DNA of 64,000 bases from positions 248,001 to 312,000 of the IMG/VR virus record IMGVR_UViG_3300023174_002543; one strand, given 5' to 3'. How positions within the stretch are numbered: position 1 is the first letter of the stretch; every line of letters begins with the position of its first letter. Below are positions 5,554 through 22,417 of this stretch, in pieces. The position numbers and the translations under genes were made by a program. The notes below the pieces were generated by a model. That model saw only the letters and a program-made list of their open reading frames with translations, ran no database searches and was not told where the DNA came from.

Positions 5554-6486
5554 CTAACGAATGTTATTGAAGTTTACATTTACTGCATAACCCACATCTG
5601 GATTATACTTGACCAACGCCTGAACTATATTTTCAAAACTTTGCCCAAATCTCTTTACTAATTTATCTAATGCTATAGGTTGATCTTTTTCATTCATAAA
5701 TTGACCTTGATCGTCCGTATTATCAATCACAAAGTCTTCACCGTGAGTATGGTAATACTCATCAAGTTGATCACCCGAAGTTATGGGAATATCATCTATG
5801 AACACACTAAAGTATAACTGATATTTCTCACCCGTATATTGTGGTTGTTTTGGTAATAATATTACTAATGGAAAACTACTATGATAACTATCAAAATAAT
5901 TTGTTCCTGTTGTAGCCGCTGTGCACCAGCGAGTACCTTGACCATAATAACATGCCGCTTGTTTATTTTCAGGTATGATTGCTCTTACAGTATTATCTTG
6001 GTATAACTCTAATGCATTACCCTTTGCCATATTTGGATCAGTTGGGTCAGGATATTCATCTAGTACATCAAAAAAGTCTTCAAATGATCTGTACCCTAAA
6101 ATATCGTTACGTGGACTAGATATCTTTTTACGTAATACAAGGTTATAAAACTTTGTCAAATAGTCGGTTAGTGTACTGCGTAAATCTTCAAATAACGTGC
6201 CATGAATATATTTCCACTCATTAATATAAGTTTTAATTATCCAGGGAGTATATTGATTATTTCTAGTAGGATCAACATTTTCAAATGCTTGTATTACTCT
6301 TGGTAAGTAGGTTTCAGCATTATTTTGAATCTCTTGTTCTATAGCATCACTACCAGTGATAGGTTTACGTATACCCAATTGCAATATCATGGTAGTGTCA
6401 TTAACAATAGCTTGTAATAAGGCAGGACCAAACTTTTGAGTAGTTATAGCTCTGTTGTATTCAATTAAAAATTCGTTTGCTCTCAT
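5554..6486 (-). CDS. putative internal head protein with PcfJ-like region
   Basis: N-terminus MRANEFLIE (capsid-targeting-like); motif ACYYGQGTRWCTAA...NYFDSY...KYQL. Confidence 0.55.
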   Translation of the reverse strand: MRANEFLIEYNRAITTQKFGPALLQAIVNDTTMILQLGIRKPITGSDAIEQEIQNNAETYLPRVIQAFENVDPTRNNQYTPWIIKTYINEWKYIHGTLFEDLRSTLTDYLTKFYNLVLRKKISSPRNDILGYRSFEDFFDVLDEYPDPTDPNMAKGNALELYQDNTVRAIIPENKQAACYYGQGTRWCTAATTGTNYFDSYHSSFPLVILLPKQPQYTGEKYQLYFSVFIDDIPITSGDQLDEYYHTHGEDFVIDNTDDQGQFMNEKDQPIALDKLVKRFGQSFENIVQALVKYNPDVGYAVNVNFNNIR

Positions 6487-6502
6487 TTAATCATCCTTTA
6501 TG

Positions 6503-8002
6503 TTATTGAAACATTTCAGGGTGATCTTTACCGTATACTTTGATGTACTTACCAGCAGCCATATCCGCCAGCATTTCAATTGGGCTACCTGGATAGCTAT
6601 CACCATCTTTAATCATGTTCAATTGCATTTGACGATGATGTGTTAGTTCATGGAATATGGTACGGAAGATATCAATTAAGTTTCTGTTACCAACATATAC
6701 CCAAATATCATTACCTTTATGCACACCGGTATGATGACCTGCTTGTGCTACCTTAGTATTCTTACTAATAGTAATCTTTGGATAAGGTTTTTGCATGTTA
6801 AGTGTCTTGTATGACCACTTAATAAAGTCTTTTATCTTTTGTATATCTTCCGGGCCTTCTACGCCCTCATTCACATTACTTTTTTTTTGGGATAATGGCG
6901 TGATGTTACCTTCTGGTTCTTTAACATCACGTTGTGTTGGTGGAAAAGTTCTTTTACCGTGTTGAACTTTATTCATTGGGCGCTTTAGTGGTAATACATC
7001 ACCTTCCATCACACCTTGCTCATCTTCAGGTTTAGTAGTCAACACAAACTTCTTACCTGCATTAAATGACTTTGCCATCATTGTCCGAGCGGCTTTAGTA
7101 GCAGTTTCTTTGTTACGGTACTGATAGGGTGTGCCCATTTTATCTTTAACAATTTTACCATTAGCACGGATATACCATGTTCTTGTATCAACAGGATCTG
7201 GAACATGATATTCGTCATCTTCTCTATGACGCTTGCCTAAACTCGGGGAATTAGGATCTGCAAAACCATGACGATAACCGCTTTCCGCCACACCTTTAGT
7301 AACAATATAACCTTTGCCTTTACATTGTGGACAATTTGTAGCAACTTTTGTGCTATCTTTCTTTGTCATAGTATGATAACCTTTGCCATTACAATGTTTG
7401 CAATCGTGTGATGTGCTATCTTCCGCCACACCTAGTTTCTTATCTCTCTTTACAGCATCACTGTATGTTTTCAATACACTAGGATTCTTTTTAACAAGTT
7501 TGTTTAACTCTTTGCCACTTTCAATATCTTTTGACTTTTGAACATCTTTGGCGTATTTTTTAGTTAAGTCAGGTCTTGCCTTCAACAAATCTCTTAGCAT
7601 TTTATCATATTCATCTTCTTCTAAACTGCCTTCCGCCACACCTTGTCTTCTACGCATAATTTCATCAGTGATGGCAGCTATAATTTTTAATCCAATTTCA
7701 TCTCTTTTGATAGTTTTAATCATACGCAAAAGATCGGATGTTGAATAATTTCTATAATGAGCATGTCCGCTCTCGGTTACATCTTCTTCACCTAATCTGT
7801 TTTTGATTTTCTTAATCCAAGTATCAGGGGTATGTCCATATTTCTTAACAAACATGTCGTGTAATTTTTTACCCGTGATTTTATGCTTAACAGAAATGTT
7901 TTGCATTAAACGGTCAATAGTGTCGTAGTTGTGGCGCTTAAGTTTAGGTAATCTATTCTTAAGTTCGTCTACGGCGGATTCTTCTAATTCGTGTGCTCTC
8001 AT
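6503..8002 (-). CDS. modular putative head polyprotein (GVAE-delimited modules, CxxCxGxG Zn finger, C-terminal HExxH zincin-like domain)
   Basis: MRAHELEE leader; junctions GVAEG, GVAED, GVAES, GVMEG, NVNEG; CKHCNGKG...CPQCKGKG; RTIFHELTHHRQ...SPIEMLAD. Confidence 0.7.
   Translation of the reverse strand: MRAHELEESAVDELKNRLPKLKRHNYDTIDRLMQNISVKHKITGKKLHDMFVKKYGHTPDTWIKKIKNRLGEEDVTESGHAHYRNYSTSDLLRMIKTIKRDEIGLKIIAAITDEIMRRRQGVAEGSLEEDEYDKMLRDLLKARPDLTKKYAKDVQKSKDIESGKELNKLVKKNPSVLKTYSDAVKRDKKLGVAEDSTSHDCKHCNGKGYHTMTKKDSTKVATNCPQCKGKGYIVTKGVAESGYRHGFADPNSPSLGKRHREDDEYHVPDPVDTRTWYIRANGKIVKDKMGTPYQYRNKETATKAARTMMAKSFNAGKKFVLTTKPEDEQGVMEGDVLPLKRPMNKVQHGKRTFPPTQRDVKEPEGNITPLSQKKSNVNEGVEGPEDIQKIKDFIKWSYKTLNMQKPYPKITISKNTKVAQAGHHTGVHKGNDIWVYVGNRNLIDIFRTIFHELTHHRQMQLNMIKDGDSYPGSPIEMLADMAAGKYIKVYGKDHPEMFQ
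7002..7645 (-). repeat. in-frame direct repeats AGGTGTGGCGGAA (3 exact + 1 variant)
   Basis: Plus-strand ttccgccacacct at 7283-7295, 7421-7433 and 7631-7643; variant ccttccatcacaccttg at 7002-7018; spacings 210, 138 and 279 nt. Confidence 0.92.
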
Positions 8003-8007
8003 ACTTA

Positions 8008-8015
8008 TATTTATC
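8008..8015 (-). promoter_or_regulatory. T4-like late promoter GATAAATA, 5 nt before ATG
   Basis: GATAAATA-TAAGT-ATG(8002); the same motif recurs upstream of many structural genes in the window. Confidence 0.75.
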
Positions 8016-8028
8016 TCAAAATAAGAAA

Positions 8029-8113: not shown

Positions 8114-9580
8114 TTATTTTAAACCTGCGAGTGATTTAATTCTGTTTAGTGATTTAGATTCATCTGCTTGCACTGATGATACATCTTCATCAGGTAATTT
8201 GTCATTTTTATTATCGGTTGATACTGAAGGGTTACTAGATGCTAATTGAGTTTTAGCAATACCGTCTAATGTATCACCACGTTTTATTGTATAATCTTGT
8301 CCACCTACTTTAATAGTATCTCCGGCTCTAATTTTGTTAACATCTTTAATTTTATCAGCATTTGCTTGCTGAATTGACTGTGCTCCTGCAGAGCCTTTAT
8401 AACCTGAATCAGGTGATGCAACATTACGTGAATTTGGTGTAGTATTATTCGGTTCTGGTACATCTACACCTTTTTCATCAGTGTTGGGTGTGGTAGGGGG
8501 TGCAACAGCAGGCGCCGGCGGTTGTGATTTAACAGATGGCTGAACAGGTGATTGACCACCTCGTCCGGTCATACCTTTGTTTGCTGCAGCAGCATTGGCT
8601 GCACTCGTAACAGGATTTAGATTAGTAGACTTTGCAGGAGAGTTATATGCATCTCTAGCCGCATTGACTCCCATTGCACCAAAAGATATTGCAGGACCAA
8701 AACCCGGCACAAACCCGCCGGCTGCGCCTAATGCAGATATAACTGCACCTGTTCTATCACCTTTTTGATATCTTCTATATGCTTCTTCAGCATCTAATGC
8801 TATACCTGCACCGGGAATAACTCTTCCCAATACTTTTTTACCTATTGACTTTGCTCCGGCTTTTGCTCCAGCCTCTGCACCCGCTTCGACCCCTGTTGCT
8901 ACGTTAGGTCTATTAGCAGGAACCTCTTTACCCATAACTGGATCTATTCTAGTACTGGTATCTAATGCCGGTGTTTTTTGACCAAGTGTTGATGATATCT
9001 TTCCTTTAGCCGCATCGACCCCGGCATCAATGGTGGCTCTAACTTTTTTACCTGCATTGTAACCTGTATCATATGCGGCAGTATTAGCTGGTGGTGTAGA
9101 AGCCGGTTTAACAGGGACTTCTCTGCCCATAGAAGGTTCACCGGGTCTAGCTGTCCCTACATTATCATTAGGAACCGGTCTTCCGCCTACAGATGCTCCA
9201 GGTTTATCTATTCCAACTCTATTTGGTATATTTCCAGATGATGTGTTAGAGACAGGTGGTGTTGATGATACTTGTCCAGTTCTGTTATTTTTCCATACTG
9301 CTGGGTCGGAACTAGAGACGGGTGGTGTTGAAGAAGTTACACCAGTTCTTGGGTTAGTCCAAACTGATGGCTTATTATTTACTGTACGTGCAGGATCATA
9401 TCCTAGGTCCTGCATAGTTTTTATTTGACTAGGTGTTAATGGTGTATTGGTTTTATTTAACGGTACGCCTGCTTTTTCTAAATCTAATTGTGCTTTATAT
9501 ACAGCCGCTTGTCTAGGATCAGCTAAGTTTACAGTAGGCTTAGTTGCTTCGTTAATTTTATTAAATTCACTGAATCTCAT
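8114..9580 (-). CDS. putative virion/ejection protein with Gly-rich hydrophobic segment and permuted LysM-like motif
   Basis: MRFSEFNKINEA leader; Pro/Thr-rich repeats; KKVLGRVIPGAGIAL...GAVISALGAAGGFVPGFG; NKIRAGDTIKV...YTIKRGDTLDGIAK; C-terminal SLNRIKSLAGLK. Confidence 0.6.
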   Translation of the reverse strand: MRFSEFNKINEATKPTVNLADPRQAAVYKAQLDLEKAGVPLNKTNTPLTPSQIKTMQDLGYDPARTVNNKPSVWTNPRTGVTSSTPPVSSSDPAVWKNNRTGQVSSTPPVSNTSSGNIPNRVGIDKPGASVGGRPVPNDNVGTARPGEPSMGREVPVKPASTPPANTAAYDTGYNAGKKVRATIDAGVDAAKGKISSTLGQKTPALDTSTRIDPVMGKEVPANRPNVATGVEAGAEAGAKAGAKSIGKKVLGRVIPGAGIALDAEEAYRRYQKGDRTGAVISALGAAGGFVPGFGPAISFGAMGVNAARDAYNSPAKSTNLNPVTSAANAAAANKGMTGRGGQSPVQPSVKSQPPAPAVAPPTTPNTDEKGVDVPEPNNTTPNSRNVASPDSGYKGSAGAQSIQQANADKIKDVNKIRAGDTIKVGGQDYTIKRGDTLDGIAKTQLASSNPSVSTDNKNDKLPDEDVSSVQADESKSLNRIKSLAGLK

Positions 9581-9597
9581 ATATATATATTTATCTA

Positions 9598-9675
9598 TTA
9601 AACCGGGCTGTATGGATTGCGAAATTTATCGTAACCGTCATCTTCAGGGTATACAGGATAATCGTTTGGATTCAT
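9598..9675 (-). CDS. 25-aa micropeptide MNPNDYPVYPEDDGYDKFRNPYSPV
   Basis: ATG overlaps the dps stop (TAATG) and the ORF fills the gap up to the late promoter at 9595-9588. Confidence 0.5.
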   Translation of the reverse strand: MNPNDYPVYPEDDGYDKFRNPYSPV

Positions 9676-10115
9676 TATTCACGCTCAGTTTTAAGAATAC
9701 TACGAATGAACCAAGCCTTCTTACCATATAAGTCTTGTAGTTCAGCCATATAGTTAGCAATACCTTGTTGACGGTCTTCTGTTGCTTGGTCAAACATTGT
9801 AGTAACTAACTCAAGCATTTTTTCAATGTCTTGTAATGTTTCTGCAAACATTAATTGAGCACGTGGAATTTTTGTTTGGTCTTCAATAATAGTTAGTTCA
9901 GCATATCGTTGTAAACTACCTGGAGTATAACTACCTACTATTCTGATATACTCTGCAATAGTATCAATTGTTTCATTTACATCTTGGTATAGTGTATCAT
10001 AGAATTGATGATATTGTGGGAAATTACTACCTTCAATGTTCCAATGAAAGTTTTGACTTTTAATAGCAAAACTCTGTGTGCTTGCTAATAATATTTTTAG
10101 GCTATCTGATAACAT
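9675..10115 (-). CDS. dps: Dps/ferritin-like DNA-protecting protein
   Basis: QNFHWNIEGSNFPQYHQFYDTLY...IDTIAEYIR and C-terminal KKAWFIRS: Dps ferroxidase motifs. Confidence 0.92.
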   Translation of the reverse strand: MLSDSLKILLASTQSFAIKSQNFHWNIEGSNFPQYHQFYDTLYQDVNETIDTIAEYIRIVGSYTPGSLQRYAELTIIEDQTKIPRAQLMFAETLQDIEKMLELVTTMFDQATEDRQQGIANYMAELQDLYGKKAWFIRSILKTERE

Positions 10116-10170
10116 TTTGGAAGAGTCCCTCTGTTCTTTAAATAAAAATCTACTAAATCTTGATCCATGA

Positions 10171-11814
10171 TTAGTGTTTCAATAACAATGTACTTAGTAC
10201 ACCTGTATCATTAGCACTTAAATCTGGCTCACCGGGTGCTACGATAACATTATATTTCATACTAGTGTTTTGGCTTTTCTTTACTGCCCACTCATCATAA
10301 CTTAATATTGAGTTAGCACTAATGCCATATTCTTTTGCTAGTCGTTGTTTTAGTTCAGGTAGTTGGTCCGGTTTTACTTGCCACTGTCCTTCAGTACCTT
10401 TGACTAAATTACCCTTAGCATCTTTAACTAATAAGTCTTGGAATAGTCCAGTTGGTACAATACGACTATTCTTAGTTTTATCTAAGTTAGGATCAGCAGC
10501 TTTAACTTGTTTCTCTTGTGAAGTGTGTGCGCCCTCACTCCAATTAATAATGAAGTTGCTTGGTTTTTGTGCAAGTGCAGCATTAGCCATTTTAGTATAA
10601 GCATAGAATTTAACGTCAGGTAAACTTTGTGCTAACTTAAATGCCAAGTCTAAGTATTCTGGACTAAAGAAGTCGCCAGCATCATGCCAGCGAATACTAA
10701 CAGAGTATCCACCCTTCTTACCTAAACTTTCTTCTTTAGCAATTTCATTTGCTAGTTGTTCAAAGAAACCATCTGGGTTATTCAATAGATATGTAATAAT
10801 ACGACCATCACTTAACCATGCGGCTTCAAACTGAATCTTACCACCTTTCATAGCAAAGCAATCTATTTTACAACTACCAGCACCCGGACATGTGTTGACT
10901 ACAATTAAGTTGTTTGTGTTTTCATCTAGTGCAAGACCAACTAATGCAGCAAAGCCAATGTTAAAGAACTGTTCTAAGTCACCGTTGCTGTGCTTCATCT
11001 TTTCATTTTGCTTTAGTAACTTTTTAGGACGAACTGCTAATGCTTGTTTAACATCTTCTTCGCGGTATCTTTTACCAGTAGCATCATAATACTTGATTAC
11101 GCTACTACGATGAATGTAAGGCATACGATATTTGTCTTGCTTTGTTTTACCAGACACATATTTCTCTTTGCCTTTTTTATCTAATTTAACTTGACCTGTT
11201 TTCTTATCAATGTCAGGAGTACCCGCAATACGTGTCATGTAGTCTTGGAATTCTTGCCCAGCAATGTCACGCTGGTCAATAGGTAGTTTAGTTGCTTCAT
11301 CTATACCCATATCTTTGTGACGTTGGGCTATTGATTCTTTAGCGCCTAATTGACTAAGTGCTTCTGCAGCTTTTGCTAGAGCCTCAGGGTTAGCAGAAGG
11401 GAATTTATTCATAATAAACTGTACTATGCTATTACTCCAAAGATACATTTTTTCTTTGTTATTCAAATCATGTTCAATTGATGGAGTAGGTACATAATAT
11501 TGTTTATTAGATTTATATTCCTGCCATAATCTGTCATATTGAGTTGAATCTACAGGAGTAACGATATTATGCATCATGCGTTGAAATGCTTCTTGATTCT
11601 TATCAATTCCGGTCTTTTTACCTAATATTCTGAGAACATAATTTTTTAATTTGTTTATTCCATTACTAAAAGCACCTTCGTCTAATTCTTCATTATCATC
11701 AAAGTCATCTGCCTCAGGATGTTGAACAAACTGGTCAACACTCATAATTTTAATGCCGCTAGGCGCACCGGGTAATTTAGGCGTTGCGCCTTCCATTAAT
11801 TCTATGATATTCAT
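10171..11814 (-). CDS. GP88-family (radical-SAM-like) domain fused behind N-terminal modules
   Basis: KQNEKM...TCPGAGSCKIDCFAMKG...IRWHDAGDFFS...FYAYTK; leader MNIIELMEG; junctions LDEG, IDEA. Confidence 0.7.
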   Translation of the reverse strand: MNIIELMEGATPKLPGAPSGIKIMSVDQFVQHPEADDFDDNEELDEGAFSNGINKLKNYVLRILGKKTGIDKNQEAFQRMMHNIVTPVDSTQYDRLWQEYKSNKQYYVPTPSIEHDLNNKEKMYLWSNSIVQFIMNKFPSANPEALAKAAEALSQLGAKESIAQRHKDMGIDEATKLPIDQRDIAGQEFQDYMTRIAGTPDIDKKTGQVKLDKKGKEKYVSGKTKQDKYRMPYIHRSSVIKYYDATGKRYREEDVKQALAVRPKKLLKQNEKMKHSNGDLEQFFNIGFAALVGLALDENTNNLIVVNTCPGAGSCKIDCFAMKGGKIQFEAAWLSDGRIITYLLNNPDGFFEQLANEIAKEESLGKKGGYSVSIRWHDAGDFFSPEYLDLAFKLAQSLPDVKFYAYTKMANAALAQKPSNFIINWSEGAHTSQEKQVKAADPNLDKTKNSRIVPTGLFQDLLVKDAKGNLVKGTEGQWQVKPDQLPELKQRLAKEYGISANSILSYDEWAVKKSQNTSMKYNVIVAPGEPDLSANDTGVLSTLLLKH

Positions 11815-13625
11815 TTGTTATTTCCTGATAGTCTAAGTAAGTTATTTAATTCAACTGTAGATTCACCTAAATCTTTTGGTTTTTCTTGTTGTTTATTTTT
11901 GGCATCTTGTTCTTGTGCTTTACGCTTTAAGTTAGCAATCATTTTAGCCCATTGTTCAGGAGTATATAGTCCACCAATTAAGCCATCATCTTCATCATCT
12001 TTTACTTCTGCTACTTCTTTTTTGTCATTTGGTTCATCTGGTATTGGAACTGGTTTAACTGAGTGCCAACCCGGCCCGGGTGGTGCCATCACTACATCAA
12101 AGTTTTTACCACCACCTAATTCTAATATCTTTTTGATATTATTCATTGTTTTAGTTTCAGAAGAATTTTTAACAACAACAGTACCATCTGGTTTAATTTC
12201 ATGTACTAATTGCTGAACAATATTAGACATGCCGGGCATTTTTTTTGAACCACGATTCAATGCTTTCTTAGCGGCAGCTGCCTGTGGGCTAGAATTCTCA
12301 TGTATTTGTTTTTGCATTGACGATGCAGGTACTATAGTCCAATTACTATCATATGGGTGTGTTTTATGTAATTCGGTACTTGCTTGTACTTTAGGTATTG
12401 GCCCGGTTACATCATCACCCTTTCCGTGATATTTTCCGTGAAAATCTAAATTACCGCGCATCACTATATACCACTGGTCATTAGATACAAGTTCATTTAG
12501 TTCAACGGATTCGTTATGTTTTTTTTTACTGACAGAATCTTTAAATGATTGTGCAGTTGGTGCACCTTTGCTACCCGGCTTACGCATATGCTCACCTGAA
12601 CCATTTTTGATTCGTTTTTGTTTAGCATGTATGTTAGCCCATAGACCCTTGCTTTCTTCTTCTATTTCGTCACCGGGTGTAGGTGTCGTTGGTGCTGCGG
12701 TAGGTGTTGCGGCTGGGTTGCCTCCAGCAGTAGCCGGAGGATAATCGGCCGCTGTTTTACGGGCACTCGGCGCTACTCCATTTGTATATTGTGTTGGTTT
12801 CAACGTAGCATTAGGCATGTTGTTTGGGTTAACTACACTTTTAGCCATTCCCTGAATATTTGATGCCGCTTGATTAGCATCAAATTTTTCTAACTCATCT
12901 GGATTAGCAGAGTTAATAGTTTGTTGTGCTTGCAGATATTGCTGTTGTTGTTGCGGTGATAATCTTGCGTATTCAGGGTCTTTTGTTGGGTCTTGGCCTC
13001 TGAATCTTCTAACGTCATTAGAAACACCTCTCATTAATTGAGGTGTAAATTGTCTAATAGCATTACCGGCTTGTTGTGCTTGTTGTGCTGGGTTACCTGC
13101 TTCTTTTAGTTTTGAAATTTTTTGTTCAGCAATCATTACTAATTGTTTTAGTTCTTGTACACTCTCACAATGCCATCTACGTAAACTCTTATTGATATTA
13201 CTGTTTGGATCTCTTGCAGTCTTAGCACCTGTACGATGCTTTTTCATACCACGCATTCTAGCACAGAAACTAGCACGGCGTTTTGCAGATTTACTACCCT
13301 TTTTTAATTTACTAGGCTTAGTAGTTACAGCAGTTTGAATTTTACTACCTGGATGACTACGGCGATAACTCTTTACAGATTTTTGACTCATGCCGCCTGC
13401 ACGTGGATTGTTATGCTTGCTCCAGTTCTCACCTTCCGCCAATTCATCTTTTTTAGAAATAGCAATTGCTGCCTGTTGTTTGGCATTAGCGGCTTCATTT
13501 GCCGGTACACAATTGTTAACTCTAACTCCGCCCTTCATTTTAGTGCCTTGCTTTTTATAGCCTGTCCAGCACTTAGGATCAAGTCGTTTCTTTTCTTCTA
13601 CAATCGTAATTTGATTTATTTTCAT
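11811..13625 (-). CDS. modular basic putative head polyprotein (CWTGY module, SFCARM/RRWHC module, GLWANIHAK module)
   Basis: MKINQITIVEE leader; small basic modules of the kind common in T4-like environmental phages, separated by ANEA, LAEG, LKEA, IEEES, LNEL, IHEN, VAEV, LGES. Confidence 0.65.
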   Translation of the reverse strand: MKINQITIVEEKKRLDPKCWTGYKKQGTKMKGGVRVNNCVPANEAANAKQQAAIAISKKDELAEGENWSKHNNPRAGGMSQKSVKSYRRSHPGSKIQTAVTTKPSKLKKGSKSAKRRASFCARMRGMKKHRTGAKTARDPNSNINKSLRRWHCESVQELKQLVMIAEQKISKLKEAGNPAQQAQQAGNAIRQFTPQLMRGVSNDVRRFRGQDPTKDPEYARLSPQQQQQYLQAQQTINSANPDELEKFDANQAASNIQGMAKSVVNPNNMPNATLKPTQYTNGVAPSARKTAADYPPATAGGNPAATPTAAPTTPTPGDEIEEESKGLWANIHAKQKRIKNGSGEHMRKPGSKGAPTAQSFKDSVSKKKHNESVELNELVSNDQWYIVMRGNLDFHGKYHGKGDDVTGPIPKVQASTELHKTHPYDSNWTIVPASSMQKQIHENSSPQAAAAKKALNRGSKKMPGMSNIVQQLVHEIKPDGTVVVKNSSETKTMNNIKKILELGGGKNFDVVMAPPGPGWHSVKPVPIPDEPNDKKEVAEVKDDEDDGLIGGLYTPEQWAKMIANLKRKAQEQDAKNKQQEKPKDLGESTVELNNLLRLSGNNK

Positions 13626-14269
13626 ATCAGTCCACCATTTTCTACTAATTCTTTATGTGCATTTAATATACTAGCAACATCAGGCTTTTCCATAAAAGGT
13701 TTATTATTAATAACACTTACATGTGTGGGAGGATATCCTTCCCATAATTGATGTATATCTTCGGTTGTTATTGTGTTTTTATTGTGTATTCTATGTAATT
13801 CTTTTGCTACTGCGTGTGGACCATGATACCAGAAGTCATTATCTTCTTCTATCATATTCATTTCTTCCAGCATTGCTTGCTCAATTTGTTTTCTAAGAAG
13901 CACATCAGATATAGTTCTACGTTTACCTAAATCACGTAGTTTTGCTTTTTTAAACAATTCTTCTTGTCTTTGTTTAGCAAGTAGATTTTCTTCACTTATT
14001 TCATCTTCATAGATGCCGGCTTTACTACTGTTAGCATATTTTTTACTAGTTTTAATACCTGAGAATATACTATTACTACGCTTATTCATCTCACCCATTG
14101 GTTGTGCAATAGTTGCTACACATCCTGAAGTCATTTCTTCTACTTTGTCAATCTTCTTTTCTTTTTCTAAGACAGTAGGATGACGACCAAAACGAGGTGC
14201 GTCACCGGCATTCTGAGTAATCCCAGGATCTCCGGCGACTGAACCTTCTTGTAAATGACTGATTTTCAT
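13622..14269 (-). CDS. putative head-associated modular protein
   Basis: MKISHLQEG leader; VEEM, IYED, ISEE, IEED junction-like sites; late promoter GCTAAATA at 14297-14290. Confidence 0.55.
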   Translation of the reverse strand: MKISHLQEGSVAGDPGITQNAGDAPRFGRHPTVLEKEKKIDKVEEMTSGCVATIAQPMGEMNKRSNSIFSGIKTSKKYANSSKAGIYEDEISEENLLAKQRQEELFKKAKLRDLGKRRTISDVLLRKQIEQAMLEEMNMIEEDNDFWYHGPHAVAKELHRIHNKNTITTEDIHQLWEGYPPTHVSVINNKPFMEKPDVASILNAHKELVENGGLI

Positions 14270-14305: not shown

Positions 14306-17300
14306 TTAGGCTATCTTTATTCCAAATACTGCCCAGTTATAACCATCACTCCAAACATCCCAATATTGGGTAGTAGCTTGTGCTAACACTTTGGTACTTG
14401 CAGAACTACCGCTTGGACCATAGAAGTTACCTGCTGGTGTACTTAATGTAATGTTTTGTGAAGTGTTTTGCCAGAATCTATAACCAATACCTGAGTTAGC
14501 AGCCTGTGTTGGGTCTGGTAGCGTAACAGTATATGTACCTGAACCAGCAAATTCAATAAATCCACTAGCATCTGAAGTTGTTAATGTAGTAGTTGTAGTA
14601 AGCACTCTAGCACTCTTGCGTATGCCACCAGTAACACTTAAATTACCTTGTATTATTGTATTTCCAGAAACAGATAAATTACCTGCAGTTTTTAAATGAC
14701 CGGCTGATGCATCAATAGTAACTTTAGATGTGTGCTTTAAATTTCCATCATATATCATTACATCCATATCACCTGCACTAGCATTATCTAGTGTTGGAGT
14801 AGATGATGTAATAAATCCACTTAATATACTTGTACCATTAGCATAGTTAATTTTAGAAGTATCAGATGGTAATGTTAAATTACCGTTTTCATCGAATGTC
14901 CAACGATGTGCTATACCGTCACTTGCTTTCTGATTTTCAATGTATACTTGAGGTTTGTTTATTAAATTATCTTTGAATGTTACATCTATCCAAGACCATG
15001 CATCATTAGGTCCAGTAGCAACATCTTCTACGTATACATCCCAAACACCTGCTGTTTGATACTCTACTGTTCTATAATTTTCAAATGTTGTAGTGAGTTG
15101 CAATGATGTATCAGAAGTTATGTTACCTGTAGGGACTGTTGTAGTTCCGTCAGTACCAAATGTCCATTGATTGTTATTTGTACTAGTTCCAACAACAACA
15201 TTGCCGCCGTTCTTTTCAATCTTAACATACTGGTCGTCATCGCCCAAGTACATGTCAGTAATTGAAGGATCGCCGGCTATTAAGTGAACATGATGGTCTT
15301 CACTACTACCACTTCTTGTTAGTGTAAGCGGTGATATCAATCCACCAATACTAAACCCTACAGCATTGCTAAGGGTGATAGTGAAAGTTGTCATAGTACT
15401 TGATACTGGTATAGTCCAAGTTATTAGTTTAGAAGGCTCACTAGTAAATGTCAATGTACCTGTTAACGCTCTACCTAATTGTTGTTGAGTACAATCAGTA
15501 AATGTATAATCTACTGTTCCGGTAACTGGGGTAAGGTTATAATCAGGAATTATAGTTATAGTTATAGTATCACCGTCCGCAAATCCACCAGGATGATCGG
15601 AACTAATTCCTTGAGCACCTGTTAGGCGAACTACTAAACTTTGTCCAGCCAATGCATTCGGTGGTGTGATGGCTGTTGAGTTGGCTGTTTCACTTAAGAT
15701 AGTACCTTGTGGTAATGCTAAGTTACCATCTTTATCAAATGTCCAAGTACTAGTGACTCCATATGAATTAACAGTTTGCAATCTAATATTGCCGGCAACC
15801 GTTACCACTTCAAAATCACTAGTGTCAGGCGGTGTGATATTAAATGTTTTTTGTCCACCGTTATCCGTCGTTTGAGAAATATTAGCACCATTAGCAATTG
15901 TCAATACAGCATCATCATGGAAAGTCCATTGATATCCGTCGACTTCAATAGCAGCATAAGTTTCTTCTACCCAAATATAATTATTATGGCTTTGCATCGA
16001 GGCATAATTTAATCCAACGATATTAACTACATTGGTATCACCGTCATTATTAATTACACCACCTCCCGGTACTGTTAAATTACCATCTTTATCAAATACC
16101 CAATTCTTATTAGTAACAGTAGAAGTTGGGAAGTTGATACTAACAATTCCAGTCTGACCTGCAGGCAATGTTCCATCTATTCTACCACTATATCTTTGTC
16201 CATGGTCATGACCTGGATCATTTTGTCCTTGTCCTGTAAATTGCTGACTTAATACACTAGTAAATGTTTGATTTCCTGATAGTGTTGAGTAAGTAACAAT
16301 AACAGTTGCTCCTAAACTCGCACCAATTAATACACTCCATATAGGAGCCTGTGCCGTAAATATATTAATTTCAATTTGTTGTTGATTACGTTGACGCCAG
16401 CCGTCTATAACTCCAAAACCATTGCCGATATCTACATCAGTATAAAACTGAGAACCATTTGACCCTATAGTATGGTCAGTGGTTACAAATTCACCTGATC
16501 TTAATACTACATTACCATAATTGTTGAATAGTGTAGTAACTGCACCAGGATCTGTTCTACCATTATCAGGTAAGGTCAATCCAGCCGTTGCACCATGCGC
16601 TGTGTCACTATTATTAATTTGTCCGCCGGCATAGTTATATATTGTATCATTACGAAATTCCCAATTACCTGTACTTGCACCGCCTGTAGGTGCAGCCGCA
16701 AATACGCCATTGCCATAAAGAATATTACTTGCATTACCGTCTTTATCAATAGATGATATATTACCTAATGTTGGCTTACTAGTTAAGTCTGCATAACTAC
16801 CACTATACAAACTAGGTTTATTAGATAGATTGTTATAGTCACCATTAAACAAACTTGGCTTATTTGTTAAGTCTACATAGCTACCACTGAATAGACTTGG
16901 CTTATTTGTTAAGTCTGCATAACTACCACTAAACAATGCTGGCTTACCTGATATATTAGCCCATGTTGCTTTGTTATCAACATAAGTAGTAGTAGCATAA
17001 CTAGATAATGCACTAGTATCAACTTTTCCAGCTAATGCACTAGTGATTGTACTGGCATAACTACTATTATTTGCTAATGAATTTGCTAATTCTTTTAATG
17101 TATCCAATGCGGCGGGTGCCCCATCAACTAAATTATTAATTGCTGTAGTAACATATGATTGTGTAGCATAACTAGCAAGACTAGGTAGATTTAACAAATC
17201 ATTGTAACTACCGGACGTTGCAATTGTGGCAAAACTAGGTTTACCGGTAACATTAACATATGCAACTGAATTTGCAACATCTGCAATATTTGCACGGTAT

Positions 17301-17590
17301 GAACTCCCTACTGAACCACTATAGGTACTTAAGTAATTTTGTACAATAGTGTTAATTAATCTTGTCATAGATACGTTACTAACAACCGGATCTGTTGGGA
17401 TAGTAACTGTTGCAGTATTAGCAATGGGGGGAGTAACTAATGGTTTTTTAGAACCAGAACCAAATTGTGGATCTACTTTGGTATTAACAGTAGTAGATGA
17501 TGCTACTGATGACATATCAATGAACGTAGATTGCGTTGTTCTGATACTAGGATCTACTTTATTGTTTATTTTTTTATTTGTAGTTGCCAT
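14306..17590 (-). CDS. tail fibre protein
   Basis: Likely start MATT at 17590; LVDGAPAALDTLKELA motif; repeated SGSYxDLTNKP units; five WxFxxDGxLTxP-type repeats; beta-rich C-terminal tip. Confidence 0.8.
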   Translation of the reverse strand: MATTNKKINNKVDPSIRTTQSTFIDMSSVASSTTVNTKVDPQFGSGSKKPLVTPPIANTATVTIPTDPVVSNVSMTRLINTIVQNYLSTYSGSVGSSYRANIADVANSVAYVNVTGKPSFATIATSGSYNDLLNLPSLASYATQSYVTTAINNLVDGAPAALDTLKELANSLANNSSYASTITSALAGKVDTSALSSYATTTYVDNKATWANISGKPALFSGSYADLTNKPSLFSGSYVDLTNKPSLFNGDYNNLSNKPSLYSGSYADLTSKPTLGNISSIDKDGNASNILYGNGVFAAAPTGGASTGNWEFRNDTIYNYAGGQINNSDTAHGATAGLTLPDNGRTDPGAVTTLFNNYGNVVLRSGEFVTTDHTIGSNGSQFYTDVDIGNGFGVIDGWRQRNQQQIEINIFTAQAPIWSVLIGASLGATVIVTYSTLSGNQTFTSVLSQQFTGQGQNDPGHDHGQRYSGRIDGTLPAGQTGIVSINFPTSTVTNKNWVFDKDGNLTVPGGGVINNDGDTNVVNIVGLNYASMQSHNNYIWVEETYAAIEVDGYQWTFHDDAVLTIANGANISQTTDNGGQKTFNITPPDTSDFEVVTVAGNIRLQTVNSYGVTSTWTFDKDGNLALPQGTILSETANSTAITPPNALAGQSLVVRLTGAQGISSDHPGGFADGDTITITIIPDYNLTPVTGTVDYTFTDCTQQQLGRALTGTLTFTSEPSKLITWTIPVSSTMTTFTITLSNAVGFSIGGLISPLTLTRSGSSEDHHVHLIAGDPSITDMYLGDDDQYVKIEKNGGNVVVGTSTNNNQWTFGTDGTTTVPTGNITSDTSLQLTTTFENYRTVEYQTAGVWDVYVEDVATGPNDAWSWIDVTFKDNLINKPQVYIENQKASDGIAHRWTFDENGNLTLPSDTSKINYANGTSILSGFITSSTPTLDNASAGDMDVMIYDGNLKHTSKVTIDASAGHLKTAGNLSVSGNTIIQGNLSVTGGIRKSARVLTTTTTLTTSDASGFIEFAGSGTYTVTLPDPTQAANSGIGYRFWQNTSQNITLSTPAGNFYGPSGSSASTKVLAQATTQYWDVWSDGYNWAVFGIKIA
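16770..16950 (-). repeat. tandem 42-nt coding repeats (FSGSYADLTNKPSL)
   Basis: ALFSGSYADLTNKP / SLFSGSYVDLTNKP / SLFNGDYNNLSNKP / SLYSGSYADLTSKP. Confidence 0.8.
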
Positions 17591-17603: not shown

Positions 17604-19349
17604 TTATGGTTGTAGTGTCGGTGGCGTTCCGTCACGTTTTATTTTGCTACCTAATTTCTTAGCATTTTGTTGCATTGTGTATGGTGTAATATCTACTGTT
17701 AATGCAGTTTTAAATCTAGGGTCGTTACGTTCTTTTTCACTTGGTATATATCCTGACGCTTCCTTCATTAGATTCTTAGCATCACTTTTTTTAATTAGTT
17801 TTCCCCAACCGTCAGGATAAAGATTGAGGTTATCTTTACCCCAACCACGCCACATCTTTTTTCCTAATTTTGTTTGATTTAATTCACCTTCATTGTCAGT
17901 GCTTTTCTTAATATCATTACCCAACATTTTAGCATAAGCATATATTTGATATGCAATATTCTGTCCTCTATAATCTGGTTCTACTCTAGTCATATCGCTT
18001 TCTAGCCAATGTTCGCCATTTTTATCTCTATGAGCAATAAAGTTTGTGTATGCTATAGGATTTTTTGTACTATTATATGGATCAAATACCTCAATAGTTA
18101 ATCCGGGACTGTCTTCACCCCAATCATATCCCTTGCTTGTATATGTATTTGCTCCTTCAGTGCCAGTCGCTATATAAATATACCTGCCAAACTTCATTTT
18201 ATGTTTGAAATTAGGATTTAATGTGTTTGTATCTACAGCCTCATTGATATTTTCTTTCATTAGATGTTTAGCGTCTTTGCCCCATTTCTTCCACATTTTG
18301 TTACCCGCAACGGTCTGATACTTACTAGGTCTAACAGAAAATCCTAAACTCTTGGCAACTGCATACATCATAGCGGCAATTCCCTTACCTTGATGACTAT
18401 CATCTACCATTGTGTCATCACTTTCTAACCAACTATCATTCTCGTCCTGGTGAAGAACTAATTCTGCGGTACCTACTATTTGTTCATTTTTTGGTAATTT
18501 GGGATCATACGCAGTAATAAACATACCCGGAATATAATCAAAACCATTTAATGTATTTTGTACTCTGAATACATAACCGCCAAACTTAACTACTTTAGAA
18601 AGTGCCTTAGGTTCATAAAGAAAGTCTTTATTTACTGATTCAGGTAAACTTAGTTTCTTATCGTGTAATGTCTGTAGTTTTTCATATAATCTTTTAATAA
18701 TACCCTTGCTACGTAGTATTTTAAATGCTAGATTTTCTGGACTAAATTCTCCGCCCTCATCTAATCCTGCTTGACGATATTTCTTTATTGTTTTAAGTAC
18801 ATATTTAATCTTGTGTGAATCACTACTACGCATAGCGTATTCAGCCAATTTATATAATTTACGATATTTATTCTTTGTAGCAACTTGACTTATATGTGCT
18901 TTTCGCTTTCTTGGCAATTTAATCCAACTATCACGTAATATGCTATATTCACCTAAACTAATTACGGGTTCGTTACTATCTTGTACATATAATTCTACGT
19001 CAATTCCACCAATTGTTATGCTATGTGTATCATTATATATTGTCTTTTTAGCATCAAAGAATTCACGGTAAACTGGATCATTATTAAATTTACTCATATC
19101 TACTAATATATGTAAATCAATATCACTATGCTTTGTATAACTATATGCCGCATTACTTCCGCTTAATGTAATATCTTGTACTTCTATGTCATTAATTCCT
19201 AAATGATCCACAAAATCCTGTGCAATTAATAATAATTGGTCATGGACTTGAGGCTTTAATCTATCCCCATTGAACAACTCCGGGTTTAATTCTTCGTGGA
19301 AATGTATAGCGTCTAATAGGCTAAAACTGTCAAATTCTAATAGGTTCAT
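17604..19349 (-). CDS. pol-beta-family nucleotidyltransferase fused to two GNAT-like acetyltransferase domains
   Basis: SGSNAAYSY..SDIDLHILVD...VELYVQD; GNAT motif A twice (VDDSHQGKGIA, VEPDYRGQNIA); junctions LPES, INEA, MKEA. Confidence 0.75.
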   Translation of the reverse strand: MNLLEFDSFSLLDAIHFHEELNPELFNGDRLKPQVHDQLLLIAQDFVDHLGINDIEVQDITLSGSNAAYSYTKHSDIDLHILVDMSKFNNDPVYREFFDAKKTIYNDTHSITIGGIDVELYVQDSNEPVISLGEYSILRDSWIKLPRKRKAHISQVATKNKYRKLYKLAEYAMRSSDSHKIKYVLKTIKKYRQAGLDEGGEFSPENLAFKILRSKGIIKRLYEKLQTLHDKKLSLPESVNKDFLYEPKALSKVVKFGGYVFRVQNTLNGFDYIPGMFITAYDPKLPKNEQIVGTAELVLHQDENDSWLESDDTMVDDSHQGKGIAAMMYAVAKSLGFSVRPSKYQTVAGNKMWKKWGKDAKHLMKENINEAVDTNTLNPNFKHKMKFGRYIYIATGTEGANTYTSKGYDWGEDSPGLTIEVFDPYNSTKNPIAYTNFIAHRDKNGEHWLESDMTRVEPDYRGQNIAYQIYAYAKMLGNDIKKSTDNEGELNQTKLGKKMWRGWGKDNLNLYPDGWGKLIKKSDAKNLMKEASGYIPSEKERNDPRFKTALTVDITPYTMQQNAKKLGSKIKRDGTPPTLQP

Positions 19350-19362
19350 ATATGTATTTATG

Positions 19363-19391
19363 AAAAAAGGCTGTCAAATGACAGCCCTTTT
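19363..19391 (-). terminator. intrinsic terminator
   Basis: GGCTGTC-N4-GACAGCC hairpin flanked by A/T runs on both sides; late promoter CATAAATA (19362-19355) follows immediately. Confidence 0.85.
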
Positions 19392-19409
19392 AGTTAGTAT
19401 TAAGTAAAA

Positions 19410-20357
19410 TTACTTCTTACTTGCTCTTGCTTTTTTTGCAGATGCGGGTGCTTCTTCAGTTTGAACTGTAGTGGCGGTTGCAGTTTGTTGTTCCTGTTGT
19501 TTCTTTTGAACTTCAGCAACATACATAGGTCCAATAGTCTCTAATAGATGATTCTGATTTTCCATACAGAATACATAAGAACCACTGTGACGTAACAATA
19601 CACGTTTGTCAACATATACTTTACCACCGATATCACGCCAGTTTTCACAGAATGTCCAGTCTTCTGAATAGTAACGGCCTTGACGAACTGCTGTGTCAAA
19701 ATATGTCTTCAAATGCTTGTCATACTTTGGATCTAGTCCGATATCATTCTTGTATGGCTTAACAGCTGGGTGACTGTTTAGTTTCTCAAATACATGACGC
19801 TTCATTAACAAGAATCCTGTACCTGCTTTACTAACTTCTTGGAATCCATCTGGTCCTTCTTCAGCACCTTCAAATCCATTAACTACCCACTTGATGGGCA
19901 TAGTCTTCATTGGGTATAGTCCACCAATAACATCAACGTCACGGTTCAATAATACTAACAAGTGCCATGGCTCCCAACCAATATCAGCGTCAACAAAGAA
20001 TAAATGTGTTGCACCTTCTTGTTCTAGGAACTTAGCAGTTAGTGTATTACGGGCACGTGAAATCAATGATTCATTTACCATTGTTTCTAATGTCCAGTCA
20101 ATACCAAGTTGACGGGCTGTGTTTGCCCACTTAATAAATGACATGAATGTAGATTCAGTCAACATTCCACCGTAGCATGGCATTGCTATGTGGACCTTTG
20201 TTGTACGTAAGAAGTCTACGTTAACTTGAACTTGCCCTGCTGCAGGTGCTTGTTCTTTGTTTTCTGCTGATTCAGCGGCTGCTTGTTCAGCAATTTCTTC
20301 TACCTTTTCAACGGGTACTGTTGCTTCGGTTTGTGCTTTGGTTTTCTTTGTTGCCAT
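19410..20357 (-). CDS. GT-A fold glycosyltransferase-like protein
   Basis: HIAMPCYGG, ESLISRARN, LFFVDADIGW (DxD), GTGFLLMKR, SEDWTFC. Confidence 0.75.
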   Translation of the reverse strand: MATKKTKAQTEATVPVEKVEEIAEQAAAESAENKEQAPAAGQVQVNVDFLRTTKVHIAMPCYGGMLTESTFMSFIKWANTARQLGIDWTLETMVNESLISRARNTLTAKFLEQEGATHLFFVDADIGWEPWHLLVLLNRDVDVIGGLYPMKTMPIKWVVNGFEGAEEGPDGFQEVSKAGTGFLLMKRHVFEKLNSHPAVKPYKNDIGLDPKYDKHLKTYFDTAVRQGRYYSEDWTFCENWRDIGGKVYVDKRVLLRHSGSYVFCMENQNHLLETIGPMYVAEVQKKQQEQQTATATTVQTEEAPASAKKARASKK

Positions 20358-20407
20358 AATTTCCTCTTAAAAGATAATAATATTTACTATCTTTCTAGGG
20401 GGTCAAA

Positions 20408-22417
20408 TTATTTTTCTTCTAAATAATCGCTAGAATCTTCGTTGGTTTGGTGAACCTCAAGCGGCTTAACTATGATAGCCCTCATTATGCTTTGTATAGA
20501 GAATTTCTTCCCGGTGGTATCACGTAAATACAAATATGCTACGATTGCATACTTCTTTATATTTTCATCTGTATAATCTACAGGTTCTTTAGTTAGTAAT
20601 ATAGGCTTTTGTTTATAAACTAATACTAAATTTACTTTAGACCCGGCATAGATAATTCTATTCTCAATTATTCCTGTGCTACGGCGAACTTCAAAATGAA
20701 AGTCTGAATCACCTGGATGATATTCTTTAATGAACTTCTCAAAATATTGTCTTGCTAATTCAGGAGAATTGGCTTCAAATCTATCAATTATCCTACTAGG
20801 ATTTTCAACATCGTATATTTCATAATTCTTGTTTAAGCGTTCACGTGCTTGACTCATACGGTCTAGTCTATTACTAACATGACGGTCTGCTTTACCCAGA
20901 TAACTTTGTAATGTTTCGTCACTAATTTCGTTAATACCTTCACTTTGTCTTGTAACTGTAGCAATAGTTGGACCAGTTGTAGTAGGTTTAATTGGGGCAG
21001 TATTAAGTGGTTGTTGTGTTTTGAAAAAGTCACGCATATCGCTCGTTTGACCTTCATCTACTATTAAGTCTTCATGTGGCCATGATATGTAACTTTTACC
21101 GTTAACATCACCGGCACGTACTACAAATACACCACCGTCATCATATCCTTCATCTTCACCAATTTCCCAACCCATTGATGCTAATGTGCGTTCAGCACGA
21201 ATCATATCTTGTTCGTTACCAAGCCACCATTGTTTTGCTAATCTAAACAATATTTCTTCTTCGTCTGGTCCACTGTCATCTCCACCGGGTGATGCAAATT
21301 CATCTACTACTTTTTTACCGGTTATTGGATCTAGTTTTGTCTTGCTAACATATTCTTCTGGGCCATGATATATTTTTTGTTTTTTTGTTTCGGGTTTATT
21401 AAAATATGAGTGATAGTCATTAGGACTAGTTTCTTTATTCTTTAATGGTTCTTTGGGCTTATTTATATTGAAGAAACTAATTTCATCTACTTTTTTAAAT
21501 TCTTCTCTATATAACTCAACTAATTCTGCACTAGTTAATAATTCTAAATCACTTAAATCATATTTTCCAGTATCCAATAACTTCATTAATAATTTTGATC
21601 TTTGGTGCCCGTCAAGAAATTCTTTACCTACTATTTGGCCCAATGATTCTTTCATTAATTTAAGAAATTTATATTTCTGTACCGGATTTGCTTCTTTCAA
21701 TAATGGACGAATACGTTGTATTTGTTCACTTAATTTTTTTGCTTTTAATTTATCAATTGCACTAGACTTAGGTTTGACAACTGTATCATTAGTTTTTGGT
21801 GCAAGTGATTGTGCGTCAGTAGCTCCGATATATTTGTCTAATACTTTTCTAATCATTAATTCATTAGGGCTATTAGGATACATATCCTTAACAATACGAT
21901 TACGCATTTCATTATCAGCACTTGCATACATATTACGTACTTGCGTTCCGCTATATACAGTCTGACCGGCTAAATTAAATTCTTCTTTTTGTGTGACAAA
22001 TACATAACCATGTCCACCTGCTTGACCATTAAATGGCTTGCATTTATTAATATTAACGAATGGTTGATAATATCCGGGCGTACCGTCTTTTCTATTATAT
22101 GCTACTGGATCACGTTCACTGCGGACTAATATGAATATATCCTGGTCTGGATTATATTGGCTTAATATTTCTACAGGATTTAATGGACTTTTAACTGCTA
22201 CATTACGGAAATCTTGTTCGCTAACACCTGCTTGTTTAGCTAACCATTGTTTTTCTTTAAAAGGAATAGGACGTGTATTAGTATTATCGCTGGCAGTTAC
22301 ATAAAATTCAGTGTTGGGGAACTTCCCAAACTTCTCTTTGGCTTGTATATAACTACTAAAGTGACCAGCGTGAAAAGGCTGAAATCCACCACCATAAACA
22401 ACAACTATTTTGCCCAT
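20408..22417 (-). CDS. HxGH cytidylyltransferase-like domain plus C-terminal module array
   Basis: VYGGGFQPFHAGH...SGTQVR; later junction-like sites VDEI, VDEF, VDEG, INEI, IIEN, TNED. Confidence 0.7.
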   Translation of the reverse strand: MGKIVVVYGGGFQPFHAGHFSSYIQAKEKFGKFPNTEFYVTASDNTNTRPIPFKEKQWLAKQAGVSEQDFRNVAVKSPLNPVEILSQYNPDQDIFILVRSERDPVAYNRKDGTPGYYQPFVNINKCKPFNGQAGGHGYVFVTQKEEFNLAGQTVYSGTQVRNMYASADNEMRNRIVKDMYPNSPNELMIRKVLDKYIGATDAQSLAPKTNDTVVKPKSSAIDKLKAKKLSEQIQRIRPLLKEANPVQKYKFLKLMKESLGQIVGKEFLDGHQRSKLLMKLLDTGKYDLSDLELLTSAELVELYREEFKKVDEISFFNINKPKEPLKNKETSPNDYHSYFNKPETKKQKIYHGPEEYVSKTKLDPITGKKVVDEFASPGGDDSGPDEEEILFRLAKQWWLGNEQDMIRAERTLASMGWEIGEDEGYDDGGVFVVRAGDVNGKSYISWPHEDLIVDEGQTSDMRDFFKTQQPLNTAPIKPTTTGPTIATVTRQSEGINEISDETLQSYLGKADRHVSNRLDRMSQARERLNKNYEIYDVENPSRIIDRFEANSPELARQYFEKFIKEYHPGDSDFHFEVRRSTGIIENRIIYAGSKVNLVLVYKQKPILLTKEPVDYTDENIKKYAIVAYLYLRDTTGKKFSIQSIMRAIIVKPLEVHQTNEDSSDYLEEK

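Follow-up and report, generated by a model that had tools for sequence, protein, structure and literature searches.

A hypervariable gene block beside the DNA polymerase gene of an uncultivated jumbo phage probably encodes mosaic cargo polyproteins that are addressed to the phage head. The block occupies positions 5554–22417 of the window, by which we mean the whole stretch of 64,000 nucleotides analysed here (positions 248,001 to 312,000 of IMG/VR record IMGVR_UViG_3300023174_002543). Its proteins would be recognised by a T4-type leader at the N-terminus, by internal spacers of the type cut by prohead proteases and, in some of them, by a scaffold-type tail at the C-terminus. Under this interpretation the locus, which is apparently expressed late, would produce proteins that are co-assembled into the prohead core by the leader and/or the tail. 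A gp21-like protease, presumably encoded elsewhere in the genome, would then remove the leader and cut at the spacers, typically (Q)GVAE|G. The folded modules (5–40 kDa, many of them basic) would stay in the head and exit with the DNA at infection, and the spacer DNA would double as a joint for module exchange between genes and genomes. Packaging, cleavage by the prohead protease, retention, injection and an anti-defence role are predicted from signals, statistics, mosaicism and a promoter motif. A host-takeover effector set is plausible from a domain content that overlaps that of polyvalent proteins.

Leaders, internal sites and scaffold-type tails

An earlier note on this DNA had listed eleven genes of the window with a short leader, and all eleven leaders are present at those gene starts, on the minus strand. 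They comprise 5–15 residues and end in hydrophobic-x-Glu. Seven of the 11 genes within the block carry one; those without are a ferritin/Dps-like gene (9675–10115), a tail-fibre-like gene (14306–17590), a phrog_1574 gene (19410–20357) and the gene of a 669-aa protein (20408–22417). A loose version of the leader pattern, [LIVMF]xE within residues 1–18, matches about 22 of 50 window genes and for that reason does not discriminate alone. Near-identical leaders are found on non-homologous proteins: MRANEFLIE, MRATEFIAE and MRA(S/T)EFITE, the last on three consecutive genes elsewhere in the same genome. An independent set was obtained by picking open reading frames (ORFs) solely for containing spacer DNA; 46% of these start with M-x(1-8)-[LIVMF]-x-E, and the share is 24% among the remaining ORFs at these loci (P=1e-4) and 18% in internal windows. 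The window leaders resemble the N-termini of T4 ipII and ipIII, gp24, gp22, gp21 and gp67, as taken from the T4 record, and the mature parts that follow them are mutually unrelated by Pfam and PHROG. The T4 internal proteins (Ips) have in common only such a packaging leader (PMC12373910; PMC5694885). When the mature parts were compared with T4 ipI, ipII and ipIII by tblastn, matches stayed at chance level; homology to the T4 Ips is not expected, since these are unrelated to one another.

Internal sites point in the same direction. With the leaders excluded, the 11 leader proteins hold 38 [LIVM]xE[GASD] sites versus 18.4 in shuffles (2.1-fold, z 4.7), and neither an Asp version nor the reversed motif is in excess in them. 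Most of the surplus comes from the proteins encoded at 6503–8002 (7 vs 1.4, 5-fold) and 43767–47258 (16 vs 6, 2.7-fold). The other window proteins are at expectation (34 observed, 34.5 expected, 1.0-fold). Between the window polyproteins and their relatives, 41% of homology breakpoints fall within 8 residues of a motif site versus 17% by chance (P<0.0005), which bears out the earlier observation that apparent domain boundaries fall at such sites. As module borders, the GVAE sites, ELDE|G and GIDE|A in the gene at 10171, ELAE|G in that at 11811, NINE|A and SLPE|S in that at 17604 and IVDE|G in that at 20408 were confirmed, whereas GLDEG (17604 gene) lies inside a phrog_36119 match and MVNES (19410 gene) inside a conserved domain. 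The domain labels cytidylyltransferase-like, GNAT, GP88, LysM, DUF6321, DUF3008 and DnaJ-type zinc finger are supported, and the zincin label holds to the extent that an HExxH module is weakly zincin-like. The papain-like label for 5554–6486 is neither supported nor excluded: this 310-aa protein has no Pfam match, and its low-confidence AlphaFold2 model gave no meaningful fold match.

The motif was calibrated on scaffold proteins of the phage clade and on T4 gp22, both presumed protease substrates; gp21 is known to cut T4 gp22 to pieces (PMC5694885). The clade scaffold (59 proteins) has 13.9 [LIVM]xE[GASD] sites versus 2.9 when shuffled, a 4.9-fold enrichment, and none of five control motifs is enriched (among them reversed 1.1-fold, Lys 0.4-fold, Gln 0.6-fold, shifted spacing 0.8-fold). 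T4 gp22 has 10 sites versus 3.2 expected. The scaffold also ends in a conserved C-terminal tail (e.g. ...DIRKLAGLK), which is present on the scaffold of the cultured relatives K64-1, pEa_SNUABM_47, SD-15_S21 and Phosso. Such a tail occurs in 77 of 2785 ORFs versus 0.26 in shuffles, namely on 64 scaffolds and 13 others, and the latter are for the most part mosaic proteins with a leader or with spacers. In the window it closes three proteins, each of which has a leader (8114–9580, 11811–13625 and 43767–47258).

In relatives the head module runs portal, small protein, acidic protein, gp21-like protease, gp22-like scaffold and gp23-like capsid protein. A leader of this kind is also present at the start of the clade scaffold, protease and small core protein, and the capsid protein has LLE|G at residues 16–18, as in T4 gp23. 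The gp21-like protease is found in more than 600 contig stretches of the clade and in cultured relatives, and a single clade contig carries both the protease (L136) and QGVAEG polyproteins (L217). As a side observation, proteases of T4-like cyanophage type (L059–L116) have a conserved GIME|G directly after the catalytic domain and the K64-1 type has VFE|S in the corresponding position; related proteases are reported to cleave themselves C-terminally, and both sites are candidates for such a cut.

Signals held in common with the scaffold at both termini could also mean that the block proteins are head-addressed and cut but serve in assembly instead of being injected, whether as additional scaffold, as core or inner-body material, or as basic peptides that condense DNA in a very large head. 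Many of the predicted pieces are small and basic with pI 9–11, the basic modules DUF6321 and DUF3008 have a wide distribution among T4-like cyanophages, and large internal protein masses are known in giant phages (PMC5694885). We find this rather doubtful. Two GNAT modules, cytidylyltransferase-like, GH19+LysM, ParB_N and SOD-like modules and the hypervariable mosaic content fit conflict cargo better, and the block is missing as a whole from the collinear region of Agrobacterium phage Atu_ph07 and is thus dispensable for assembly there.

The promoter context bears on the timing of expression. The motif GATAAATA occurs in 11 copies, all on the coding strand and 6–60 nt upstream of a start codon, and is probably the late promoter of this phage group. 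On the minus strand it precedes the leader genes that start at 8002 (8008–8015), 9580 (9588–9595) and 48097 (48115–48122), as well as the tail tube (51507–51514) and gp13-like neck (57910–57917) genes; the remaining minus-strand copies are at 22955–22962, 28647–28654, 28703–28710, 34951–34958 and 43691–43698, and one copy is on the plus strand (59984–59991). Baseplate and virion-protein genes are also preceded by it. ATAAATA is depleted overall (23 vs 40), and so is the T4 late promoter TATAAATA (2 vs 12.5 expected), which argues that the latter is not used here. Sigma-70-like TTGACA-N17-TATAAT pairs were seen at ~26760–26800, upstream of a DnaJ-like gene (25951–26757), and at ~59890–59945, upstream of the gene at 58735–59889; this suggests that these genes, unlike those behind GATAAATA, form an early class read by the host polymerase. 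Between the genes at 19410–20357 and 17604–19349, a G+C-rich hairpin with a T run followed by CATAAATA (19363–19391, minus strand) resembles a terminator and, after it, a new promoter within the block. In Atu_ph07, mass spectrometry placed virion proteins in three clusters, one of them numbered CDS 284–329 (PMC6102473); its match to the region collinear with the window is approximate, as the gene numbers of that paper appear to differ from those of RefSeq.

Shuffled modules, spacer DNA and an HExxH module

A scan with the 499-aa protein encoded at 6503–8002 yielded 27 related loci. Members of this family retain the modules at both termini, the C-terminal one being the HExxH module, and vary between loci in the modules in the middle. 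A Lys-rich module of about 70 residues recurs with 89–96% identity in at least six different proteins, flanked on both sides always by (Q/E)G(V/M)AE(G/D). The same domain may stand alone with its own leader or be fused behind a spacer in a polyprotein; stand-alone examples with a leader are a GNAT in L014 (MRAKEFVSE) and a cytidylyltransferase-like protein in L016. The exchanged middle modules, the moving module and the stand-alone homologues together rule out a family of single integrated proteins with invariant domain order, the arrangement that the earlier note had named as fatal to its proposal.

The spacer is conserved as DNA. All three GVAE spacers of the 499-aa gene have the identical core GGTGTGGCGGAA (3 matches vs 0.01 expected). 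When loci were collected by protein similarity, GGT GTG GCG GAA was the exact codon choice in 19 of 27 independent GVAE spacers versus 0.4% expected, an expectation this low because GTG (15%) and GCG (7%) are rare there. The mobile module recurs in nine other contexts with a DNA identity of 95–97% that extends as far as the spacers and no further. The exact QGVAEG 17-mer is present in at least 120 viral contig stretches, which hold at least 39 complete ORFs of 259–1562 residues with one to six spacers, most of them with leader-like starts. The top Pfam families of 50 such polyproteins are DUF6321, GP88, GNAT, GH19, ParB_N, LysM, zinc finger, cytidylyltransferase-like and DUF3008. The variant spacers (GMAE, GVME, NVNE and other [LIV]xE) keep the P3 and P1 residues and not the DNA. 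An internal start or Shine-Dalgarno-like pause site at the spacer was rejected by eye, as no start codon lies at a suitable distance. Separately, a protein of similar build was seen in Synechococcus phage S-RIM2 (L029 3113–4336), where a 407-aa protein near the terminase small-subunit gene has the same small basic modules (DUF3008-like, DUF6321 and others) with VEE|G, QME|G and QNE|G between them; S-RIM2 is a cultured T4-like cyanophage, so that the arrangement may be testable in a cultivable phage.

A spacer that is conserved at the nucleotide level with rare codons, shared as a 17-mer by so many contig stretches and marking the ends of DNA identity of the mobile module could be simply a flexible linker and a DNA-level recombination joint. 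The proteins would then remain uncleaved, as beads on a string, and the N-terminal similarity would reflect translation-start or other constraints. The lack of a significant internal motif excess in most leader proteins and the chance frequency of the loose leader pattern fit with this as well. It would leave unexplained why the spacer motif equals the one enriched 4.9-fold in scaffolds, why three proteins have a scaffold tail, why the leaders are like those of the T4 head core, and why variant spacers keep P3 and P1 rather than the DNA and the spacer of another lineage still contains L-x-E. We therefore hold it to be unlikely. One intriguing idea, to which we assign only a small chance, combines the two functions: the modules may be mobile in-frame cassettes, and the spacer of 13–17 nt (GGT GTG GCG GAA, rare codons) a recombination or homing joint that permits insertion into any head-addressed gene; the insertion would be tolerated since the joint also codes for a prohead-protease site through which the module is cut out again, by the logic of a proteolytic intron.

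The HExxH module offers a different candidate for the cutter. The HExxH motif and a downstream Glu are invariant in the 6503–8002 family, and the C-terminal module is modelled with confidence (predicted local distance difference test, pLDDT, 87). The module is found in 1781 protein clusters of 115–2192 residues and is mostly C-terminal in them. It gave no significant match in a profile search against PDB sequences and none in Foldseek, where the weak top matches are zinc metallopeptidases (zincins). The longest relative, P0082 (2192 aa), is distant from the family; it is a giant polyprotein in which the spacer L-x-E-I-G-(V/I)-N-(K/N)-P, again with hydrophobic-x-Glu, is repeated more than 20 times.

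From the invariant residues, the weak zincin-like fold matches and the C-terminal position in clusters of very variable length, these could be self-processing polyvalent proteins whose spacers are cut, in cis or in trans, by the embedded module rather than by the prohead protease, a role proposed by Iyer et al. 2017 for MPTase-bearing polyvalent proteins. Against this, the module is present solely in 6503–8002 among the 11 leader proteins of the window and lacks a significant fold or sequence match, leaders with the same motif also occur on proteins without a peptidase module, and the spacer motif is the one enriched in scaffold and T4 gp22, which are substrates of a serine prohead protease. 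Self-processing seems to us quite improbable. The earlier note had contained neither this alternative cutter nor the DNA-level conservation of the spacer nor the second, C-terminal addressing signal.

Several observations weigh against head-addressed cargo polyproteins cut by a prohead protease. First, tblastn with T4 gp20–24 and clade head proteins turned up no protease, scaffold or capsid gene of this genome, either in the window or in the ~155 kb examined. The ~80 kb past polB and ~20 kb past the far end of the window hold replication, nucleotide-modification, chaperone and small early-type genes and a second leader cluster, with no head module, and synteny with K64-1 and Phosso did not predict its location. 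The window itself has no T4-type head gene, protease included, in line with the earlier statement that the protease gene is not in it. Second, the motif excess is individually significant in two of the 11 leader proteins and not in the other nine. Third, the mosaic 669-aa protein (20408–22417) is without a leader. Fourth, the capsid protein of the clade has YLAE|A just before the conserved mature region, near the T4 65|66 site but unaligned with it. Fifth, the proteins of the syntenic block of Atu_ph07 have no leaders, no polyprotein organization and no homology except for gp305. Sixth, the conservation of synonymous sites in the spacer points to a nucleotide-level constraint that is not explained by proteolysis, and the conserved HExxH module that ends the 6503–8002 family could be the processing enzyme instead of the prohead protease.

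Set against these are the motif enrichment in scaffold and T4 gp22, the scaffold-type tail, the late-type promoter motifs, the shuffling at sites and the stand-alone homologues with leaders. The earlier proposal of a capsid-targeting leader combined with internal prohead-protease sites gains from all of these, and the first three objections (head genes not found, significant excess in 2 of 11 proteins, one leader-less mosaic protein) are among the reasons why we infer head-addressed cargo and go no further.

The leader genes and their genomic setting

The leader genes of the block and the gene of the 669-aa protein are on the minus strand. The 310-aa leader protein (5554–6486; leader MRANEFLIE, 6460–6486) has a conserved CYYGxGTxWC core, and homologues in L002 and L014 carry the same leader. 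The 499-aa polyprotein (6503–8002) consists of a leader (7979–8002), the conserved N module, the Lys-rich mobile module (aa 125–194), a DnaJ-type zinc-finger module, two more modules and the HExxH module (aa 381–499). Its spacers are DVTE|S (7769–7783), GVAE|G (7628–7642), GVAE|D (7418–7432), GVAE|S (7280–7294), GVME|G (7001–7015) and NVNE|G (6863–6877). The next leader gene (8114–9580; leader 9548–9580) encodes a 488-aa protein of low complexity, rich in Pro, Ala and Gly, with LysM near the C-terminus and the scaffold-type tail SLNRIKSLAGLK (8117–8152); its leader as well as its tail are retained by the orthologues in L002 and L003. The leader-less ferritin/Dps-like gene (9675–10115) sits in the middle of the block; along with the SOD-like leader gene found elsewhere, it hints that the gene set includes oxidative-stress functions.

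The 547-aa leader protein (10171–11814; leader 11791–11814) has a GP88 domain and a variable insert between ELDE|G (11674–11688) and GIDE|A (11293–11307). This insert is missing in L003 and L015, and L023, L026, L014 and L002 have other modules in its place. A 604-aa leader protein (11811–13625; leader 13593–13625) contains DUF6321 and other small basic modules also found in T4-like cyanophages and ends in the tail LNNLLRLSGNNK (11814–11849). The 215-aa leader protein (13622–14269; leader 14246–14269) has a 90% identical orthologue in L003 and longer mosaic relatives in L013 and L015. The 581-aa leader protein (17604–19349; MNLLE, 19335–19349) starts with a phrog_36119 module, a candidate nucleotidyltransferase in the earlier note, in which a GS..DxD motif was seen by eye, followed by two GNAT repeats, with junctions SLPE|S, NINE|A and LMKE|A. 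The leader-less 669-aa mosaic protein (20408–22417) combines a cytidylyltransferase-like N module with modules also present in leader proteins of relatives; in L015 and L016, homologues of its cytidylyltransferase module have leaders.

Outside the block, the window has four further leader genes, likewise on the minus strand. That of a 178-aa protein (27468–28004; MHLLLE|G) is a homologue of Atu_ph07 gp305, which starts MKIVE|G and is annotated as 'virion structural protein'. The largest encodes a 1163-aa protein (43767–47258; leader 47214–47258) with DUF3008, 16 motif sites, an internal tail-like LALIKKMSGI (44637–44666) and the C-terminal tail LLTDWKKLSGIK (43770–43805). At 44037–44246 it also contains a 37-residue unit twice in tandem; IEE|G closes each copy, and a Cys-rich knuckle comes next. 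A 203-aa leader protein (47486–48097; MKSLRHYLME|S) adjoins the head-closure gene, and a 279-aa one (56291–57130; MRATEFIAE) lies between the gp13-like neck gene and a dNMP-kinase-like gene. The second leader cluster, ~70 kb from the block (L314 13354–17987), has four leader genes. They encode a SOD-like protein with the leader MRDIISLLE|D and three proteins with MRA(S/T)EFITE|A: a 649-aa LysM+GH19 protein with a QGVAE|G spacer, a 528-aa GNAT/ParB-like protein and a 181-aa protein.

The window belongs to a jumbo myovirus with a genome of ~367 kb and T4-type core genes, whose source record measures 367,104 bp; other public assemblies hold the same phage, one of them at 369,957 bp. The GC content of the window is ~36%, and its minus strand codes for nearly all genes, among them genes for ClpB-like, DnaJ-like, clamp loader, tail sheath, tail tube, neck and baseplate proteins. 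The family-B DNA polymerase gene (polB, 2516–5224) is 42–49% identical to those of Sinorhizobium phage Phosso, Agrobacterium phage Atu_ph07, Vibrio phage 2.275.O and the RaK2 group, jumbo phages that have T4-type core genes and belong to group 2.2 of Iyer et al. 2021. The phage is thus a member of the RaK2/Atu_ph07 group and not of the phiKZ group. The window is collinear with Atu_ph07 from polB through the sheath gene. Fifty-four matches were to polB homologues, the best with 78–86% identity, and large contigs of the clade measure ~260–340 kb; because of these matches the block adjoining polB is a feature of the whole clade, a hypervariable locus of mosaic polyproteins common to a large uncultivated group. 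No cultured phage matched the block by megablast, and tblastn of the block proteins matched single modules only, in cyanophages, pelagiphages and mycobacteriophages.

Other features of the genome were noted in passing. With ClpB and DnaJ at 23657–26757 of the window and ClpX, ClpP, ClpS, Hsp70, Hsp20 and a SprT-like protein in L311/L312 (same genome, ~50–60 kb past polB), the chaperone and proteolysis set of the phage is near-complete; ribosomal protein S21 and an IF1-like protein are encoded as well. Just past polB, in L307/L308 of the same genome, genes for GTP cyclohydrolase I, a PTPS/QueD-like protein and radical-SAM proteins cluster with sugar-nucleotide enzymes, which suggests a pathway for 7-deazaguanine-type or other DNA modification. 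The sole sizeable plus-strand ORF in a 993-nt gap of the minus-strand array (28811–29584; 257 aa, TTG start) is probably a real gene, since L267 has a homologue with 63% identity.

Relation to known systems and implications

The arrangement is reminiscent of Ip1–3 and Alt of T4 with their protease gp21. Alike are the short leader ending in hydrophobic-x-Glu on unrelated proteins, the hypervariable loci, the T4-type head module in the clade and a presumed cleavage motif in common with scaffold and capsid. Leaders of the T4 type have about 10–20 residues and end in (L/I)-x-Glu. Many of the proteins described here differ in being extended strings of modules with repeated internal spacers, reaching 1163 aa in the window and 1562 aa in relatives. 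Some have a scaffold-type C-terminal tail, the spacer is conserved as DNA, and the mature parts have no homology to Ips. Polyvalent proteins (Iyer, Burroughs, Anand, de Souza, Aravind 2017) likewise unite many unrelated small domains in a single polypeptide with mosaic architectures. They have two to fifteen disparate domains, are encoded among late or structural genes and are predicted to travel with the DNA (Iyer et al. 2017). Their repertoire overlaps with that of the block in GNAT, ParB-like (ParB_N), lysozyme (GH19) and LysM domains and perhaps, through the weakly zincin-like HExxH module, in a zincin-like peptidase, and none of the hallmark conflict domains (ArdC-N, DarB-type methylase/helicase, ART, PBECR and others) is among the top Pfam families of the 50 polyproteins. 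Release by an embedded peptidase was proposed for polyvalent proteins, whereas most of the proteins here lack one and have prohead-protease-type spacers, a leader and a scaffold-type tail instead.

In phiKZ, 201phi2-1 and SPN3US, many head-internal proteins are cut at x-x-Glu, sometimes at several sites, by a prohead protease related to that of T4 (PMC5694885). The ejection and inner-body proteins of phiKZ-like phages include paralogues that share N-termini, but their propeptides are long (>100 residues) with a small P3 residue (A/S/G-x-E), compared with leaders of 5–15 residues and V, L or I at P3 here. The Dar system of phage P1 (DarA, DarB, DdrB, Hdf) is similar in that anti-restriction proteins are packaged in the head, some of them processed before or during packaging; it differs in head type and has no leader–spacer grammar in common with the block, and no sequence relation to it was seen. 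RNA-virus polyproteins offer an operational analogy only: there too, cuts at short conserved sites release working units from one translation product, but the cutter here would be a capsid maturation protease inside the prohead and the products cargo, not replication machinery. A full-text literature search found no published description of the leader–spacer–tail grammar or of DNA-level spacer conservation.

If head-addressed cargo polyproteins are what the block encodes, widespread uncultivated giant phages load their heads with modular, fast-changing enzymes and small basic proteins. T4 capsid targeting would extend to polyproteins, and the scaffold-tail peptide would be a second packaging tag of potential use in cargo loading. 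A single short sequence seems to serve as both a protease site and a recombination joint; should the modules indeed be mobile cassettes, the capsid would be a plug-and-play cargo hold, and fast turnover would be driven among the injected proteins across the giant-phage clade. The leader–spacer–tail grammar can be read from sequence and would make injected proteins predictable in metagenomes, a class of proteins that includes the few known inhibitors of restriction systems.

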